A DNA stretch of 63,529 nt, the filler included, from Olpidium bornovanus S191 (Eukaryota > Fungi > Olpidiomycota): NCBI GenBank assembly GCA_017911155.1. It is 26 parts of 26 records of this genome, joined end to end, with 100 filler letters (N's around TTAATTAATTAA, not from the genome) between each part and the next. Parts side by side here need not be neighbours in the genome. Positions count along the whole stretch, not along the records: positions 4,980 to 9,003 come from JAEFCI010003735.1; 25 more parts are not named here. One strand, 5' to 3'. Both the position numbers and the translations under genes were made by a program. The first letter of the stretch is position 1; each line of letters opens with the position of its first letter. The notes below the pieces were generated by a model that saw nothing but the letters and a program-made list of their open reading frames with translations, was not told where the DNA came from and did not search any database. This document shows positions 4,831-9,103 of the stretch, one piece after another.

Positions 4831-5480
4831 GCGGAGAACAAATTAACTGGTTCTCCAGAAGCCTTATGGTTTGGCCACGNNNNNNNNNNNNNNNNNNNNN
4901 NNNNNNNNNNNNNNNNNNNNNNNTTAATTAATTAANNNNNNNNNNNNNNNNNNNNNNNNNNNNNNNNNNNNNNNNNNNNCCAATAGTGCACGTGACCCGG
5001 TGTACTCTATAAGAGACGCGCGCAGTGCGGACTGATTCCGAACTCTTGCTCGCGCAAAAAGGCAAAAACAAACAAAATAAGCTCACCATCCTCGTCGCGG
5101 CCGTCGGGCCCATTCGTTGCCTTTTTTTCCCGTCGGGGATTCTCGTCTGAGCGGGGGCGTCGGCTGCCCGCTCTGGTCCAGCAGCGTCAGCTGCTGCAGA
5201 CGGGAACGGTGCGGGGTGATCGGCGCGCTGAGAGGGTCTGTGCGTGGGATCAGCGGGAGGCGCGCTCGGAGACGGATTGATCGCCGTTCACGGGCCCGGC
5301 GCGCCTCGCGAACCAATGGGATCGCCCAGAGCCCCTGCGAGCCCGGAGCCAGTCCTGCTTAACTCCCCTCGCACCGGATCGGTCCGCTAGGCCGGCAGGC
5401 CAGATCGGTGCCGACACCGTCATGCTACCTGCAAACATCATCCCGTAGACACGCCGCTTTACGACTGTTACTCCTATCAT

Positions 5481-5726
5481 TGTTAGCGGCCTCCAATGGC
5501 TATAAGTAGAGAACTATCGTCGTCGGGTTCTGGGTTGCTTCCTCACTCAGATCAACAGAGTTCTTCTTTGTTCTCAACAGATCAAGAGTCCCACTCTCCA
5601 AAGTTAGCAAACAATCACCATAGCAACCTTCCTTCTACCAATCCAACCATGCCTACTCCGCAACTCACCATACTCGATTACGAGCCCCTCCTCTCCTCGG
5701 GCGAAAACTGTTTGTCCTGGAGATTG
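5481..5726 (+). mobile_element. Short 5' LTR (5481-5579, TGTTA...CAACA) plus gag N-terminus of a copia element, interrupted at 5726 by a second element
   Basis: 99-bp TG...CA unit containing TATAAG. ATG at 5649 gives MPTPQLTILDYEPLLSSGENCLSWRL, matching the copia gag N-terminal (L...G.NY.SW) motif and the copy at 33.4-33.7 kb. Confidence 0.6.
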
Positions 5727-5840
5727 TGTTAGATTGTATTCATCCCCGCTGTTGTACTATATGTAGTTTTTCTTTGAATAAAACTCTCCCCCCTCCTCAC
5801 GGAGTGGAAAAACAACGCAACGCAACAGGTTATGAGCCCA
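5727..5840 (+). mobile_element. 101-bp 5' LTR (5727-5827, TGTT...AACA) plus copia-type primer-binding site GGTTATGAGCCCA (5828-5840)
   Basis: Inverted termini TGTT/AACA, internal AATAAA, and an immediately following GGTTATG(A/G)GCCC, the PBS type used by copia elements primed by an internal tRNA-iMet fragment. Confidence 0.8.
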
Positions 5841-6390
5841 ACGGGATGCCCCTTCCCCTCCCGTTGACGCGTCGCCGCTCCCTCCGTCACCCCCCCACCC
5901 CGCCGCCGCTCACCGGCTGCTCATCGCCGCCGTCGCCGCCGCCACTCATCGCGGCCGCCGTCGCCGGCGCCGTCACCACCACCGTCGCCGGCGCCGTCGC
6001 AGCCACCGTCGCAGCCGCCATTTATCGTTGGCCATCGCCGGCCGCCGCCGCCGCCGCCGCCGCTCATCGCAGCCGCCGCTCACCGGCCGCCGCCGTCGCC
6101 GCCGGCCGCTCATTGCCGCCGCCGCTCACCGGCAGCTGCCGTCGCCGCCGCCGTCGCAGCCGCCGCAGCTGCCGCTCATCGCCGGCCATCGCCGGCCGCT
6201 CCTCGCCGCCGCCGCCGCCGCCGCCGTCGCCAGCAGCTGCTCATCGTCGCCGACTTCCCCGCAGCGGCGCCACACCCCGCCGCCGCCGACCGCCGCAGCC
6301 TACACCCAGCTGCCGCCTTCGTTGCCGACTTCCCTGCGTCGGCGCCACACACCGCCGACATTTCCGTGACCGACCACCACCGCTGACACC

Positions 6391-8450
6391 ATGTCCTTCG
6401 CCGACATCACTGAGAAAGGCCCAGCCAGGGCAAGCAAGCCAGGTCGGGGAGCCATTTTCTCCTCTACTCGCTTCACCGGCGTTCCTCACGAGGATGAGTA
6501 CGACGACGTCGTTCCCACCGAGACGGCCAACCCTCTTCCTCTCACGGAAGAGAATGAGATATTGAAAGCACAAGTGAAGTCCCTCCAATGCCAAGTTGAC
6601 CGCCTTACAACGAAAGCAACTGCTTCGTTTTCGTCCCCTTCCTCGACAGACGGATTGCGCCACACAGGCAGCGTACATAAGTATACGTTGCAATTCAACG
6701 CGCTCTCATCATTGATTACTGCTTGCCCGCCCGATGCCCTCATCCTCCAGTACCTCGAGAATCTCAAAGACATCGAGCAATCGCGGCTGTTCCGGGCAAC
6801 ACCGCCACTCTCCGCATGCCAAGCGGCTGCACTTCAGTATGACGCGCTTACCCGTGCAGTCACTGGTCAGGCCACGGCCGCTCTTGTCACTGGTCCGGCC
6901 ACACGGCCAGCACCTTCCTCAATCACCACGTCCCGCAACCGCCAACGCCCAAAGCTGACAACTTCCAATAATTCCCAGAAACGATCCAAGAATCAGCAGA
7001 ATCCACCGTGACAGGATCACTCCAAGTCACGCCAACCGTGCAAATTTTGCACCTTGTCAGACCACTTCACGAGTGATTGTCCACGCATTCCACAAGAGCT
7101 CCACGATGTCACTCGGCATAACCTCGCCGCCCGGCATCAGCATCATCCTCCTGCCGTCGATGTTGCTCGGAATAACCGCACGCCCCTGCCGGACAGCCTC
7201 GGCAAATCATTCCCTGGCGCCGATACCGATCGCCGCCGCCACACCAATCACCGCTGCCACATCGATATCATCATCGATTCTGGTGCAACGGAGCACATGT
7301 TTGTGGACGGCAAAATTTTCAACACCAAATTGACCGCCGCGACCGACATTGAAGTGGCAAATGGTTCCCTCCTCCCCTCTGCGGGAACGAGGACTGTTTT
7401 GCTTCATCAAGCAAGTTCACAACCTCTCTTGAATGTCCTTCACGTCCCCATCTTCCATTCCTCCCTGTTCTCAGTTGCTCGCGCGTGTGACCACGATGCC
7501 ATTGTCATCTTTGATGCACGTACCGTTCAATTCGCGATACAGCCACATCAGAGCTTTTCGCCACCGGATCTCGTCACGGAAATCTGTACCACCTCGACAC
7601 TCGTCCGCGCCTGCATCCTTTTTCTCCAGCACGCCCTTGCAACGACAGTGGATTGGCACCGCCGAATGACCCATCTGGGAAAAGACAATCTACTTCACCT
7701 CTCCAAGATTGACACTGCTGTCACCGTTCCGCCAGACATCAAGTGTGAACCCTGTCAGCTCGCCAAGGCCACACATCTGCTGCATCCTCCGAGCCTGATG
7801 CAGATTGACGAGCTTCTTGCGCTGATCCATACCGACATGGTTAGGCCACTCCTTCTGTCTCTGACCGGAGAAAAATACGTCATCAGCTGGATCAATCACG
7901 CTTCTCGTTATGCTGTTTCTCACGCCATTCCCAACAAGGAATTTGCCACAGTGCAGGCCTGTCTCGAAGCCATGAGAACCACAGCCGAGTGCCAGACCAG
8001 CAAGCTCATTAAGTGCCTCCGTTCCAATCCAGGAGGAAAATACCTGTCTGACATTTTCTGCCAATCCCTCATGGCCCAGGGAATTCAAATGCAATCGACG
8101 ATCCGGGATACGCCGGCACAGAATGGCCTATATGCTCATGTTCTGAAGTCTGAACGACGCGATAAGTTTGCCGAGGCAGCTCAAATCATGTACCTTGTTG
8201 GTTACGCTGCCACATCAAAAGGCTACCGTCTATGGGATCCCATCATGAATGTCGTTTGTAATCGATATGATGTCCACTTTGACGAGACTAAAACATATCG
8301 CGACAACCCCTTGTTCACATCGTCAGATCAATGTTTATCAATCGATTCAACCAATGAAGAGCACGTCATCGAACGAGTTTTGGATCATCAAGCTACCATC
8401 AATGGCATTTTCAAATTTCTCCTTATATGGCGAGGGTTTCCATCATCATC
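6391..8450 (+). mobile_element. Decayed LTR retrotransposon gag-pol: gypsy-like gag, CCHC knuckle, copia protease, GAG-pre-integrase, integrase (internally deleted), SH3-like domain, partial chromodomain
   Basis: LRHTGSVHKYTLQFNAL...LILQYLENLK; CKFCTLSDHFTSDC; IIDSGATEHM; DWHRRMTHLG...CEPCQLAK; LIHTDM...IKCLRSNPGGKY...TPAQNG; DKF...YLVGY...KGYRLWDP...DVHFDE; EHVIERVLDHQ...FKFLLIWRGF. ORFs 6391 and 7054 share a frame and are separated by one TGA (7009-7011). Confidence 0.9.
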
Positions 8451-8639
8451 GATGCGATGTGTGGGCGCCGCACCGCCCGCTCCCGCCGCCCGCTCCCGTA
8501 CTTCCCCCTCCGGCCCCCGGGCGCCACAACCACACCGCCCGCGCTCCCCAAACCAACAACGGAGCGGAAGCGCAGGCGAAGACAAAAGAGGACGCCGGAC
8601 CATGGAAGGCAAGAGCGCCGGAGCAAGCCCCGCCCATGC

Positions 8640-9000
8640 GGGTCAAGACCCGCAACCGCGGGGCAAGACTCGCCACCGCGGGGCAAGTCCCGCCACCGCG
8701 GGGCAAGACCCGCCCACGCGGGGCAGGTCCCGCCACCGCGGGGCAAGAACCGCCCACGCGGGGCAGGTCCCGCCACCGCGGGGCAAGACTCGCCCACGCG
8801 GGGCAGGTCCCGCCCCCGCGGGCCAAAGATCCGCCCATGCGGGGCAGGTCCCGCCACCGCGGGGCAAGAACCGCCCACGCGGGGCGGGTCCCGCCCCTGC
8901 GGGCCAAAGAACCGCCCACGCGGGGCAAGTCCCGCCACCGCGGGGCAAGAACCGCCCACGCGGGGCAAGTCCCGCCCTCGCGGGCCAAAAGACCCGGCCA
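8640..9000. repeat. GC-rich minisatellite with a 20-nt monomer (CGCCACCGCGGGGCAAGTCC-like) arranged as alternating A/B 40-nt dimers
   Basis: About 17-18 monomers read directly; runs into the contig end. Confidence 0.9.
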
Positions 9001-9103
9001 TGCNNNNNNNNNNNNNNNNNNNNNNNNNNNNNNNNNNNNNNNNNNNNTTAATTAATTAANNNNNNNNNNNNNNNNNNNNNNNNNNNNNNNNNNNNNNNNN
9101 NNN

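Follow-up and report, generated by a model that had tools for sequence, protein, structure and literature searches.

A degenerate Ty1/copia retrotransposon combining a Ty3-like gag with an integrase chromodomain on a contig assigned to Olpidium bornovanus

The window analysed here is a 63,529-nucleotide stretch of 26 joined parts from Olpidium bornovanus S191, filler included, and one of these parts (JAEFCI010003735.1, positions 4,980–9,003) is an entire 4024-bp contig of this MAG. The best overall explanation of the contig, to which we assign a probability of roughly 0.9, is that it carries a degenerate LTR retrotransposon, of which the 5' two-thirds are present and which belongs to a distinct chromodomain-bearing clade of Ty1/copia (Pseudoviridae-order) elements, in which this architecture is an old trait. 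No host gene is present on the contig, and the attribution to Olpidium is that of the MAG label. Gag, a CCHC knuckle, a copia protease, an HHCC finger, an integrase core, an SH3 tail and half a chromodomain share a single frame, that of position 6391. The first-pass annotation had reported a copia pol, a Ty3-like gag and a chromodomain in one reading frame; this combination was confirmed, with every feature that it named in position and in the frame of 6391, although a TGA at 7009–7011 interrupts that frame. An integrase-chromodomain fusion is the textbook hallmark of Ty3/gypsy chromoviruses. The same annotation was correct in regarding it as rare at best in Ty1/copia: fusions of this kind have been reported only once, in the CoDi-A elements of diatoms (PMC2774666), and our literature search found no report of a chromodomain-bearing copia element in fungi.

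The relatives of the element were retrieved by an exhaustive HMMER scan, which yielded 7330 matches headed by copia-order polyproteins. In the closest of them, P0002 (41% identity), P0003, P0005, P0008, P0049 and P0009, SH3_retrovirus is followed by a complete Chromo domain (E 1.8e-9 to 1.1e-18), and RVT_2 comes after Chromo wherever the protein reaches that far (E 1e-43 to 1e-72 in full-length relatives). All four closest relatives that include gag match PF03732, and P0002 additionally matches Ty3_capsid. The clade relatives are environmental sequences from ENA, Logan, JGI and SRC, and the intact ones encode a single-ORF polyprotein in the order PF03732/Ty3_capsid gag, CCHC, PR, IN, SH3, Chromo, RVT_2; copies with a reverse transcriptase after the chromodomain are therefore present among them. 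In an integrase tree of 159 rows the window element nests among copia elements, in a clade of eight with an SH-aLRT support of 99, seven members of which have both a chromodomain and a Ty3-like gag; P0008 joins this clade at a support of 97. In a tree of integrase plus RT (50 rows), a branch supported at 98 sets apart 15 rows that have a chromodomain, a PF03732-type gag or both. In a search with a region of P0008, PF00385 and PF03732 occurred together in 6 of 6 gag-including proteins, and PF03732 was found in none of about 110 proteins without PF00385, which had PF14223 or no gag match. Look-alikes in the ESM Atlas were limited to generic copia clusters with scores below 0.9. The closest relatives carry the whole combination in one intact ORF and group with the window element. 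The union of a pol in copia order with a PF03732/Ty3-like gag, and with a chromodomain placed behind the SH3 tail, is a real, heritable architecture and neither an assembly artefact nor a gypsy fragment inserted on its own.

The gag remnant occupies 6391–7008 on the plus strand and, as judged by BLASTP to P0002, consists of an N-terminal coiled coil (window residues 56–71 align to P0002 44–59) and the C-terminal part of a Ty3/PF03732-type capsid at 6655–7005. About 140 amino acids of the N-terminal half of the capsid are deleted, with the junction within 6604–6654. The window gag has no Pfam match of its own, and the clade gag HMM matches it at positions 71–110 only. The gypsy-type gag motif proposed in the first-pass annotation is nevertheless right by transitive homology, because window residues 89–205 align to P0002 215–330 (E 1e-14), a region that overlaps both the PF03732 and the Ty3_capsid matches of P0002. 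Among the clade relatives, the E-values of gag against PF03732 run from 5.5e-5 to 9e-13, with scores of up to 61 bits; against Ty3_capsid the scores likewise reach 61 bits (E 4e-10 in P0002), and the copia-type PF14223 is never matched. The inactivating in-frame TGA falls within gag, after the capsid and ahead of the zinc knuckle; P0002 aligns collinearly on either side of this stop (330/331), and each of the relatives has one ORF without interruption. The stop is followed by the nucleocapsid zinc knuckle C-x2-C-x4-H-x4-C (7039–7080, plus strand), which was read from the translation and aligns to the same motif of P0002; in P0004 and P0008 the knuckle is matched by PF00098.

Downstream, the protease (7270–7491) precedes the integrase (7627–8298), both on the plus strand, which is the copia order; RT has been lost from the window copy. 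In a Pfam run on the translation of 7012–8460, the copia-type modules anticipated by the first-pass annotation were recovered: the aspartic protease region with its DSG motif as Pol_BBD (E 1.1e-9, residues 87–160), the HHCC zinc-binding region of the integrase N-terminus (7627–7767, also aligned to P0002) as gag_pre-integrase, PF13976 (E 3.4e-6, at 27.2 bits against a cut-off of 28.4), and the SH3-like domain of the integrase C-terminus (8131–8298) as SH3_retrovirus, PF25597 (E 1.6e-13, and 2.5e-13 in a further Pfam search). The integrase core that it listed between them (7825–8130) is present but defective, and matches rve at an E-value of only 0.032. The first Asp is kept (HTD), the second catalytic Asp is replaced by Asn (SNPGG), and a deletion at 8130/8131 removes about 74 amino acids (P0002 738–811) where the catalytic Glu belongs; accordingly, the BLASTP HSPs against P0002 stop at 737 and restart at 812.

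The N-terminal half of an HP1-like chromodomain follows at 8356–8450 on the plus strand, identified by Pfam Chromo, by a clade HMM and by collinearity with P0002. Positions 8365–8448 match Pfam Chromo positions 2–29 of 53 with 13.9–16.5 bits (E 0.05–0.008), below the gathering threshold for PF00385 of 25.1 bits, whereas the relatives score 38–67 bits; the window score is low because the domain is cut and half of it is present. An HMM built from the relatives' chromodomains alone matches the segment at E 8.9e-5. A single HSP (45% identity, E 1e-26) begins in the SH3 tail, crosses the linker and ends within the chromodomain, pairing window residues 374–476 with P0002 812–915, and P0002 has a full Pfam Chromo match at 890–939 (E 6e-14). 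The chromodomain reported in the first-pass annotation is thus collinear with those of intact relatives and no chance resemblance; its N-terminal half is present, ending after GFPSSS. In the predicted aromatic cage, the window sequence has His at the first position and keeps the Trp and Phe of W-x-G-F, while most relatives have Tyr/Phe, Trp and Phe/Tyr. The profile of the relatives' chromodomains matches HP1/CBX5 structures at E 1.5e-20.

Beyond this point the contig (8451–9003) is GC-rich and non-coding for a retroelement: the alignment of the relatives stops at about 8450, GC rises from 46% to more than 70% at about 8451, and a 20/40/81-bp tandem array spans 8619–8989, up to the contig end. 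The junction is either a real rearrangement or a misassembly. No RT, RNase H, PPT or 3' LTR was found on the contig. With half of its capsid deleted, a premature TGA, a destroyed integrase active site and an end inside the chromodomain, the window copy is a fossil. It is also the one copy from which the element is known: a word-index search with the deposited gene model gave nothing closer than 29% identity, and a scan of JGI metagenome contigs found no further Olpidium copies. For annotation, this means that the deposited model, KAG5461390.1, joins a piece of a dead transposon to tandem repeats in translation and does not represent a host gene.

The 5' end of the element was delimited from its primer binding site, GGTTATGAGCCC (5829–5840, plus strand). 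The identical 12-mer was found in 4 of 4 fetched related contigs (L001, L002, L003 and L004, representing three different elements and drawn from ERZ27239022, SRR10938843, SRR10938823 and JGI 3300055048), each time just 5' of gag, and in L001 and L004 it adjoins the inferred 5' LTR end, in agreement with the copia-type PBS proposed at first. We take this 12-mer to be antisense to the anticodon stem-loop of initiator tRNA-Met (CAU anticodon); Ty5 and copia use such a half-tRNA primer. The 12-mer is contained in an oligonucleotide given in a paper on yeast Met-tRNAiMet (PMC11230868). A minimal candidate 5' LTR (TGTTAG...CAACA, plus strand) was read from the sequence at 5727–5828, its 3' end being set by the adjoining PBS; a TATA-like motif occurs in it at about 5757 and AATAAA at about 5780. 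An alternative start at 5482, where a second TGTTAG is followed by CCAAT and TATAAG, would give a length of 347 bp, and with one copy and no 3' LTR on the contig both starts are candidates. The LTRs of the relatives span roughly 300 bp in L001 and roughly 495 bp in L004 and have the ends TGTT...A(A/T)A; in both contigs the overlapping LTR ends are 98–100% identical and a purine tract precedes TGTT. Between the PBS and gag the window copy has a leader of 550 nt (5841–6390, plus strand) with about 80% GC and 12/46/75-bp repeats, compared with a distance from PBS to gag ATG of only 60–140 nt in the relatives. A small ORF at 5496–5732 (ending ...LSSGENCLSWR) was considered as the start of gag in an outer copia element disrupted by a nested insertion, and this reading was rejected; it has no Pfam match and no similarity to 306 copia polyproteins by phmmer or blastx. 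No tRNA gene was found within the contig.

How the clade came by its modules is a separate question. The first-pass annotation had suggested a recombinant copia-gypsy lineage, which the results do not support: the protease, integrase and SH3 tail, as well as the RVT_2 of the relatives, are all copia-type, and the architecture is an old trait of the clade, not the product of a recent copia-gypsy recombination in this genome. A more specific reading of the clade, which we put forward tentatively and at somewhat less than even odds, is that an undescribed deep Pseudoviridae clade, independent of CoDi-A and still active in uncultured soil or freshwater eukaryotes, has in the window its first copy assigned to a named host (Olpidium). 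Such a clade would unite half-tRNAiMet priming and an integrase chromodomain of HP1 type with a CCHC knuckle and a Ty3-like capsid. If true, 'chromoviruses' would have arisen convergently a second time, within Ty1/copia, and the clade could be evidence that gag modules were exchanged between the two great LTR-retrotransposon superfamilies.

An ancient form of modular exchange, in which recombination with a Ty3/gypsy chromovirus gave the founder of the clade its capsid gene, its chromodomain or both, and which shifts the first-pass idea to the base of the clade, we regard as unlikely, although it accounts for part of the data. It would agree with the absence of PF14223 from the clade gag and with the scores of that gag, up to 61 bits each for PF03732 and Ty3_capsid, and also with the PF14223 gag of the nearest chromodomain-less rows (P0042, P0091) in a 95-supported group of the integrase tree; in addition, the chromodomain of the gypsy chromovirus P0179 shows 52% identity to the P0002 region used as query, within the part that aligns. 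However, PF03732-type gag is also found in copia elements that have no chromodomain (P0015, P0018, P0067 and P0093), and because Ty3-like gag is thus common to the deep clade and to some chromodomain-less elements, any gag swap would be ancient. Moreover, so far as is known, the capsids of LTR retroelements all share one fold, so the PF03732-like score may reflect retained ancestral sequence instead of transfer. As for the chromodomain, it scores 76 bits against host HP1 and 60 bits against the single gypsy chromovirus at hand, a comparison that is uninformative, as the shortness and strong conservation of such domains do not allow a donor to be named; these scores do not point to a gypsy donor.

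It is less probable still that the element is a plain member of the diatom CoDi-A group, in which case the contig would be a horizontal arrival or non-fungal. Among published copia groups, an integrase chromodomain is described for CoDi-A alone (PMC2774666, PMC5348765), and the look-alike that a language model ranked first for the SH3 and chromodomain region of P0008 is a cluster with Bacillariophyta as its sole phylum record (score 0.85, no more than a lead). Against this, CoDi-A was scored as having no CCHC knuckle (AF3A table of Llorens et al.), whereas the window clade has one, one cluster member comes from the SRC source, which is taken to be a soil catalogue, and the record of the contig names Olpidium. 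The word-search matches included no diatom-labelled protein. Finally, it is very improbable that 8356–8450 is a misassembly, or a stray fragment of a gypsy chromovirus that came by chance to lie next to an ordinary, truncated copia element: the domain is incomplete, scores below the Pfam threshold and is directly followed by unrelated GC-rich repeats, but the single HSP with P0002 crosses the supposed boundary, every close relative has the chromodomain at exactly the same place inside one ORF, and the composition is unchanged at 8340.

For the intact members of this chromodomain-bearing copia clade, the domain order suggests how the element might work. One polyprotein supplies a Ty3/PF03732-like capsid, the CCHC knuckle, protease, integrase with its SH3 tail, the HP1-like chromodomain and RVT_2, with RNase H presumably after it. 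Reverse transcription would start from a fragment of initiator tRNA-Met whose anticodon stem-loop pairs with the complementary PBS. After processing by the protease, the chromodomain would probably stay on the integrase C-terminus. There it would anchor the integration complex at nucleosomes methylated on H3K9, so that insertions fall preferentially in heterochromatin, as they do for Ty3/gypsy chromoviruses. The heterochromatin targeting suggested in the first-pass annotation is therefore a reasonable inference for intact members, by analogy with the H3K9me readers HP1/CBX5 that their chromodomain profile matches; the window copy, as a dead relic, targets nothing. The Olpidium contig and its many intact environmental relatives show that the chromodomain-copia design is more widespread than diatoms. 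The clade also offers a second system in which to ask whether the capture of a chromatin reader evolved convergently in both superfamilies, and whether a chromodomain redirects copia integration to heterochromatin.

Among known systems, the most direct precedent is CoDi-A (CoDi-I), a Ty1/copia group from the diatom Phaeodactylum tricornutum (Llorens et al. 2009, PMC2774666; Maumus et al. 2009, PMC2806351), whose chromodomain is regarded as acquired independently of gypsy chromoviruses. Compared by description only, CoDi-A and the window clade share the copia order, with integrase after protease and the chromodomain at the integrase C-terminus ahead of RT. They differ in the CCHC motif, scored absent from CoDi-A in the AF3A marker table and present as one knuckle at 7039–7080 and in the relatives of the window element, and in their hosts, which are diatoms for CoDi-A and, for the window clade, a contig labelled as the zoosporic fungus Olpidium together with environmental contigs. 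With Ty3/gypsy chromoviruses such as MAGGY and Tf1, so far as the work of Gao et al. 2008 is relayed in PMC5348765, the clade has in common a canonical chromodomain fused to the integrase C-terminus. Both also have a PF03732/Ty3_capsid-type gag with a CCHC knuckle, and both presumably tether to H3K9-methylated chromatin. The gene order is PR-IN-chromo-RT in the window clade, in contrast to PR-RT-RH-IN-chromo in Ty3/gypsy chromoviruses, and the RT is RVT_2 instead of RVT_1; unlike those chromoviruses, the window clade has an integrase with copia gag_pre-integrase and SH3_retrovirus modules and a PBS that matches the anticodon arm of tRNAiMet.

Hemivirus-type priming of Ty5 and Drosophila copia was reportedly described by Ke and colleagues in 1999. 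In these elements, as in the window clade, the target of the PBS is the anticodon stem-loop of initiator tRNA-Met, to which it is complementary, and not the tRNA 3' end. The heterochromatin targeting of Ty5 likewise runs through the integrase C-terminus, where it depends on a short Sir4-binding motif and no chromodomain, and its gag type differs from that of the window clade. Chronos of oomycetes and ECR-1 of Ectocarpus are chromodomain-bearing gypsy lineages (PMC5348765; bioRxiv 10.1101/2024.05.11.593484 = PMC11541908), and like the window clade they represent independent integrase-chromodomain fusions in LTR retrotransposons; unlike it, they are Metaviridae with the gypsy gene order.

The copy in the piece 4980-9003 is a fossil from a genuine copia lineage that carries a chromodomain and has scarcely been described, and all results on it come from this single copy. 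The first-pass annotation placed its domains in one reading frame; all do lie in frame 1, but a TGA splits it into two ORFs, 6391-7008 and 7012 onward. Within 7012-8460 Pfam matched the DSG-bearing copia protease region (Pol_BBD, E 1.1e-9), gag_pre-integrs (E 3.4e-6), SH3_retrovirus (E 1.6e-13) and, at just E 0.032, rve, in agreement with the copia-type protease, GAG-pre-integrase, integrase and SH3-like tail noted earlier. The gag ORF returned no Pfam match. Its residues 89-205 align (E 1e-14) with residues 215-330 of our main reference, the copia polyprotein P0002, inside the PF03732 and Ty3_capsid matches of the latter; the gypsy-like gag motif reported previously is real.

HMMER, run exhaustively over 1.84 billion representatives, gave 7330 matches, only eight of which, besides the window's own model, reached the E 1e-30 level. 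The closest relatives were P0002 (41% identity), P0003, P0005, P0008, P0049 and P0009, each showing all the domains its length allows in the Pfam order Retrotrans_gag (PF03732), CCHC, Pol_BBD, gag_pre-integrs, rve, SH3_retrovirus, Chromo, RVT_2. Their Chromo matches (E 1.8e-9 to 1.1e-18) are full-length save in the truncated P0009, and alignment showed the aromatic cage to be intact in most of them. Intact environmental relatives with a reverse transcriptase after the chromodomain were found in P0002, P0003, P0005 and P0008, which are full-length single ORFs. Three of the relatives' proteins were located on four contigs of 5 kb, L001-L004, that hold complete elements (L002 and L003 both encode P0003). 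Terminal LTR overlaps, 98-100% identical, were seen in L001 (1-166 / 4860-5025) and L004 (1-127 / 4976-5102), where a purine tract is followed by TGTT at the start of the 3' LTR; starting and ending inside the LTR, these two are either young elements or assemblies through collapsed LTRs. Separately, two different clade members, P0004 with a chromodomain and P0007 without, are both reported from one ENA contig of 9063 bp and may be tandem or nested elements. The copia polyproteins P0197, P0205 and P0245 are filed in NCBI under bacterial MAGs (Gammaproteobacteria, Chitinophagaceae) and are most likely mis-binned eukaryotic transposon contigs.

In the integrase tree of 159 rows, the window falls in a clade of eight (SH-aLRT 99), seven of which combine the chromodomain with the Ty3-like gag; P0008 attaches to this clade with support 97, and support for a group of 14 rows is 95. 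In a second tree, built from integrase+RT of 50 full-length rows, a branch with support 98 sets apart 15 rows bearing a chromodomain, a PF03732-type gag or both, and nearly all of the remaining 35 have the classic copia gag, PF14223. In the list of 120 relatives of P0008, all six gag-including proteins have PF00385 together with PF03732, and none of the rest has PF03732. The pol is copia-type throughout, the Ty3-like gag occurs without a chromodomain in P0015, P0018, P0067 and P0093, and one clade member, P0007, has lost the chromodomain. Judging from these trees and domain distributions, the package of copia pol, Ty3-like gag and chromodomain is an old trait of the clade. An ancient module swap behind this architecture seems to us rather unlikely. 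The best PDB match of the clade chromodomain profile is to the HP1/CBX5 readers of H3K9me (E 1.5e-20, 76 bits), above the 60 bits against one gypsy chromovirus, and from this comparison with a single chromovirus no donor can be named. Recent copia-gypsy recombination in this genome is not supported, the pol being wholly copia and the gag and chromodomain common to a supported clade. The combination of domains first observed is confirmed, and the interpretation put on it partly supported.

The window's own chromodomain fits this clade trait. Pfam matched positions 2-29 of the 53-position Chromo profile to 8365-8448 with 14-16.5 bits (E 0.05-0.008), below threshold because only half a domain is present; taken alone, this match is suggestive. 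An HMM built from the relatives' chromodomains only found the segment at E 8.9e-5, and BLASTP showed the window to be collinear with P0002 from knuckle to chromodomain, a single HSP (window residues 374-476, P0002 812-915; 45% identity, E 1e-26) spanning the SH3 tail and the linker and extending into the chromodomain. By these alignments and the relatives' domain order, the segment is homologous to their chromodomain and in its native position, so the partial chromodomain claimed after the integrase holds. An inserted gypsy fragment and a chance match are both ruled out.

The PBS 12-mer GGTTATGAGCCC (5829-5840), proposed in the first-pass annotation, recurs exactly upstream of gag in all four contigs, and adjoins the inferred LTR end in L001 and L004. 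Its centre is ATG, complementary to a CAU anticodon. Ty5 and copia use a half-tRNA as primer, and an oligonucleotide with this 12-mer is antisense to tRNAiMet. One ending in it is listed in a paper on yeast Met-tRNAiMet (PMC11230868). The adjoining PBS sets the LTR end at 5828; for the start, read from one copy, there are two candidates: 5727 would give an LTR of 102 bp with TATA-like and AATAAA motifs, and 5482 one of 347 bp with CCAAT and TATAAG, nearer the relatives' 300-495 bp. The leader from PBS to gag ATG (5841-6390; 550 nt, ~80% GC) is built from 12-, 46- and 75-bp repeats and looks like a minisatellite expansion within the element, because relatives have only 60-140 nt there. As a copia gag N-terminus, the ORF at 5496-5732 (78 aa, ending in ILDYEPLLSSGENCLSWR) was rejected: it had no Pfam match, resembled none of 306 copia polyproteins, and is probably part of the LTR or its flank (CCAAT ~5494, TATAAG ~5505).

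Defects were mapped by BLASTP comparison with P0002. The N-half of the capsid has lost about 140 aa, window residues 72-88 replacing P0002 60-214. On P0002 the TGA (7009-7011) maps to the 330/331 boundary, immediately ahead of the CCHC knuckle (7039-7080). The integrase core keeps its first catalytic Asp and has Asn in place of the second, and a 74-aa deletion (P0002 738-811, junction 8130/8131) takes out the region where the catalytic Glu belongs. The chromodomain ends after GFPSSS at ~8450, where GC climbs from 46% to >70%, and is directly followed by a GC-rich region (8451-9003) with a tandem array at 8619-8989 (~75-80% GC; periods of 20, 40 and 81 bp nested in one another; 4.6 copies of the 81-bp unit with 90% matches) that reaches the contig end. 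The piece 4980-9003 contains no RT, RNase H, PPT or 3' LTR; the copy is dead.

Its deposited model, P0001 (849 aa), has the accession KAG5461390.1 and the title 'MAG: hypothetical protein BJ554DRAFT_6425, partial [Olpidium bornovanus]', and is 100% identical to the translation of the window. Residues 205-668 correspond to the 7012 frame, starting at residue 20 of that frame. In the region 7002-7069 the model evidently skips the TGA with an intron, which would cut part of the knuckle too and is probably an artefact of annotating a pseudogene; the last ~180 residues are translated tandem repeat, the model reading through the array after the chromodomain. Olpidium is a zoosporic fungus; the attribution rests on the MAG label, the piece carrying no host gene.

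Domain order, conserved PBS, HP1-like chromodomain and the dead state of the window copy were observed directly. Priming would be by a tRNAiMet fragment, and the chromodomain may be kept on the integrase after processing, where it could tether to H3K9-methylated nucleosomes by analogy with gypsy chromoviruses, for which Gao et al. 2008 are cited as having shown such tethering (PMC5348765). Full-text literature searches found no report of chromodomain-bearing copia in fungi, and in a survey of LTR elements from fungi chromodomains come up for gypsy only (PMC3248453). A putative chromodomain at the integrase C-terminus was described by Llorens et al. 2009 in the CoDi-A copia elements of the diatom Phaeodactylum, with its independent capture proposed (PMC2774666), and CoDi-A is still cited as the sole copia case in later papers (PMC5348765; bioRxiv 10.1101/2024.05.11.593484). 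Going by its published description, CoDi-A is listed without a CCHC knuckle (marker table, Llorens et al. 2009), whereas the window's clade has one.
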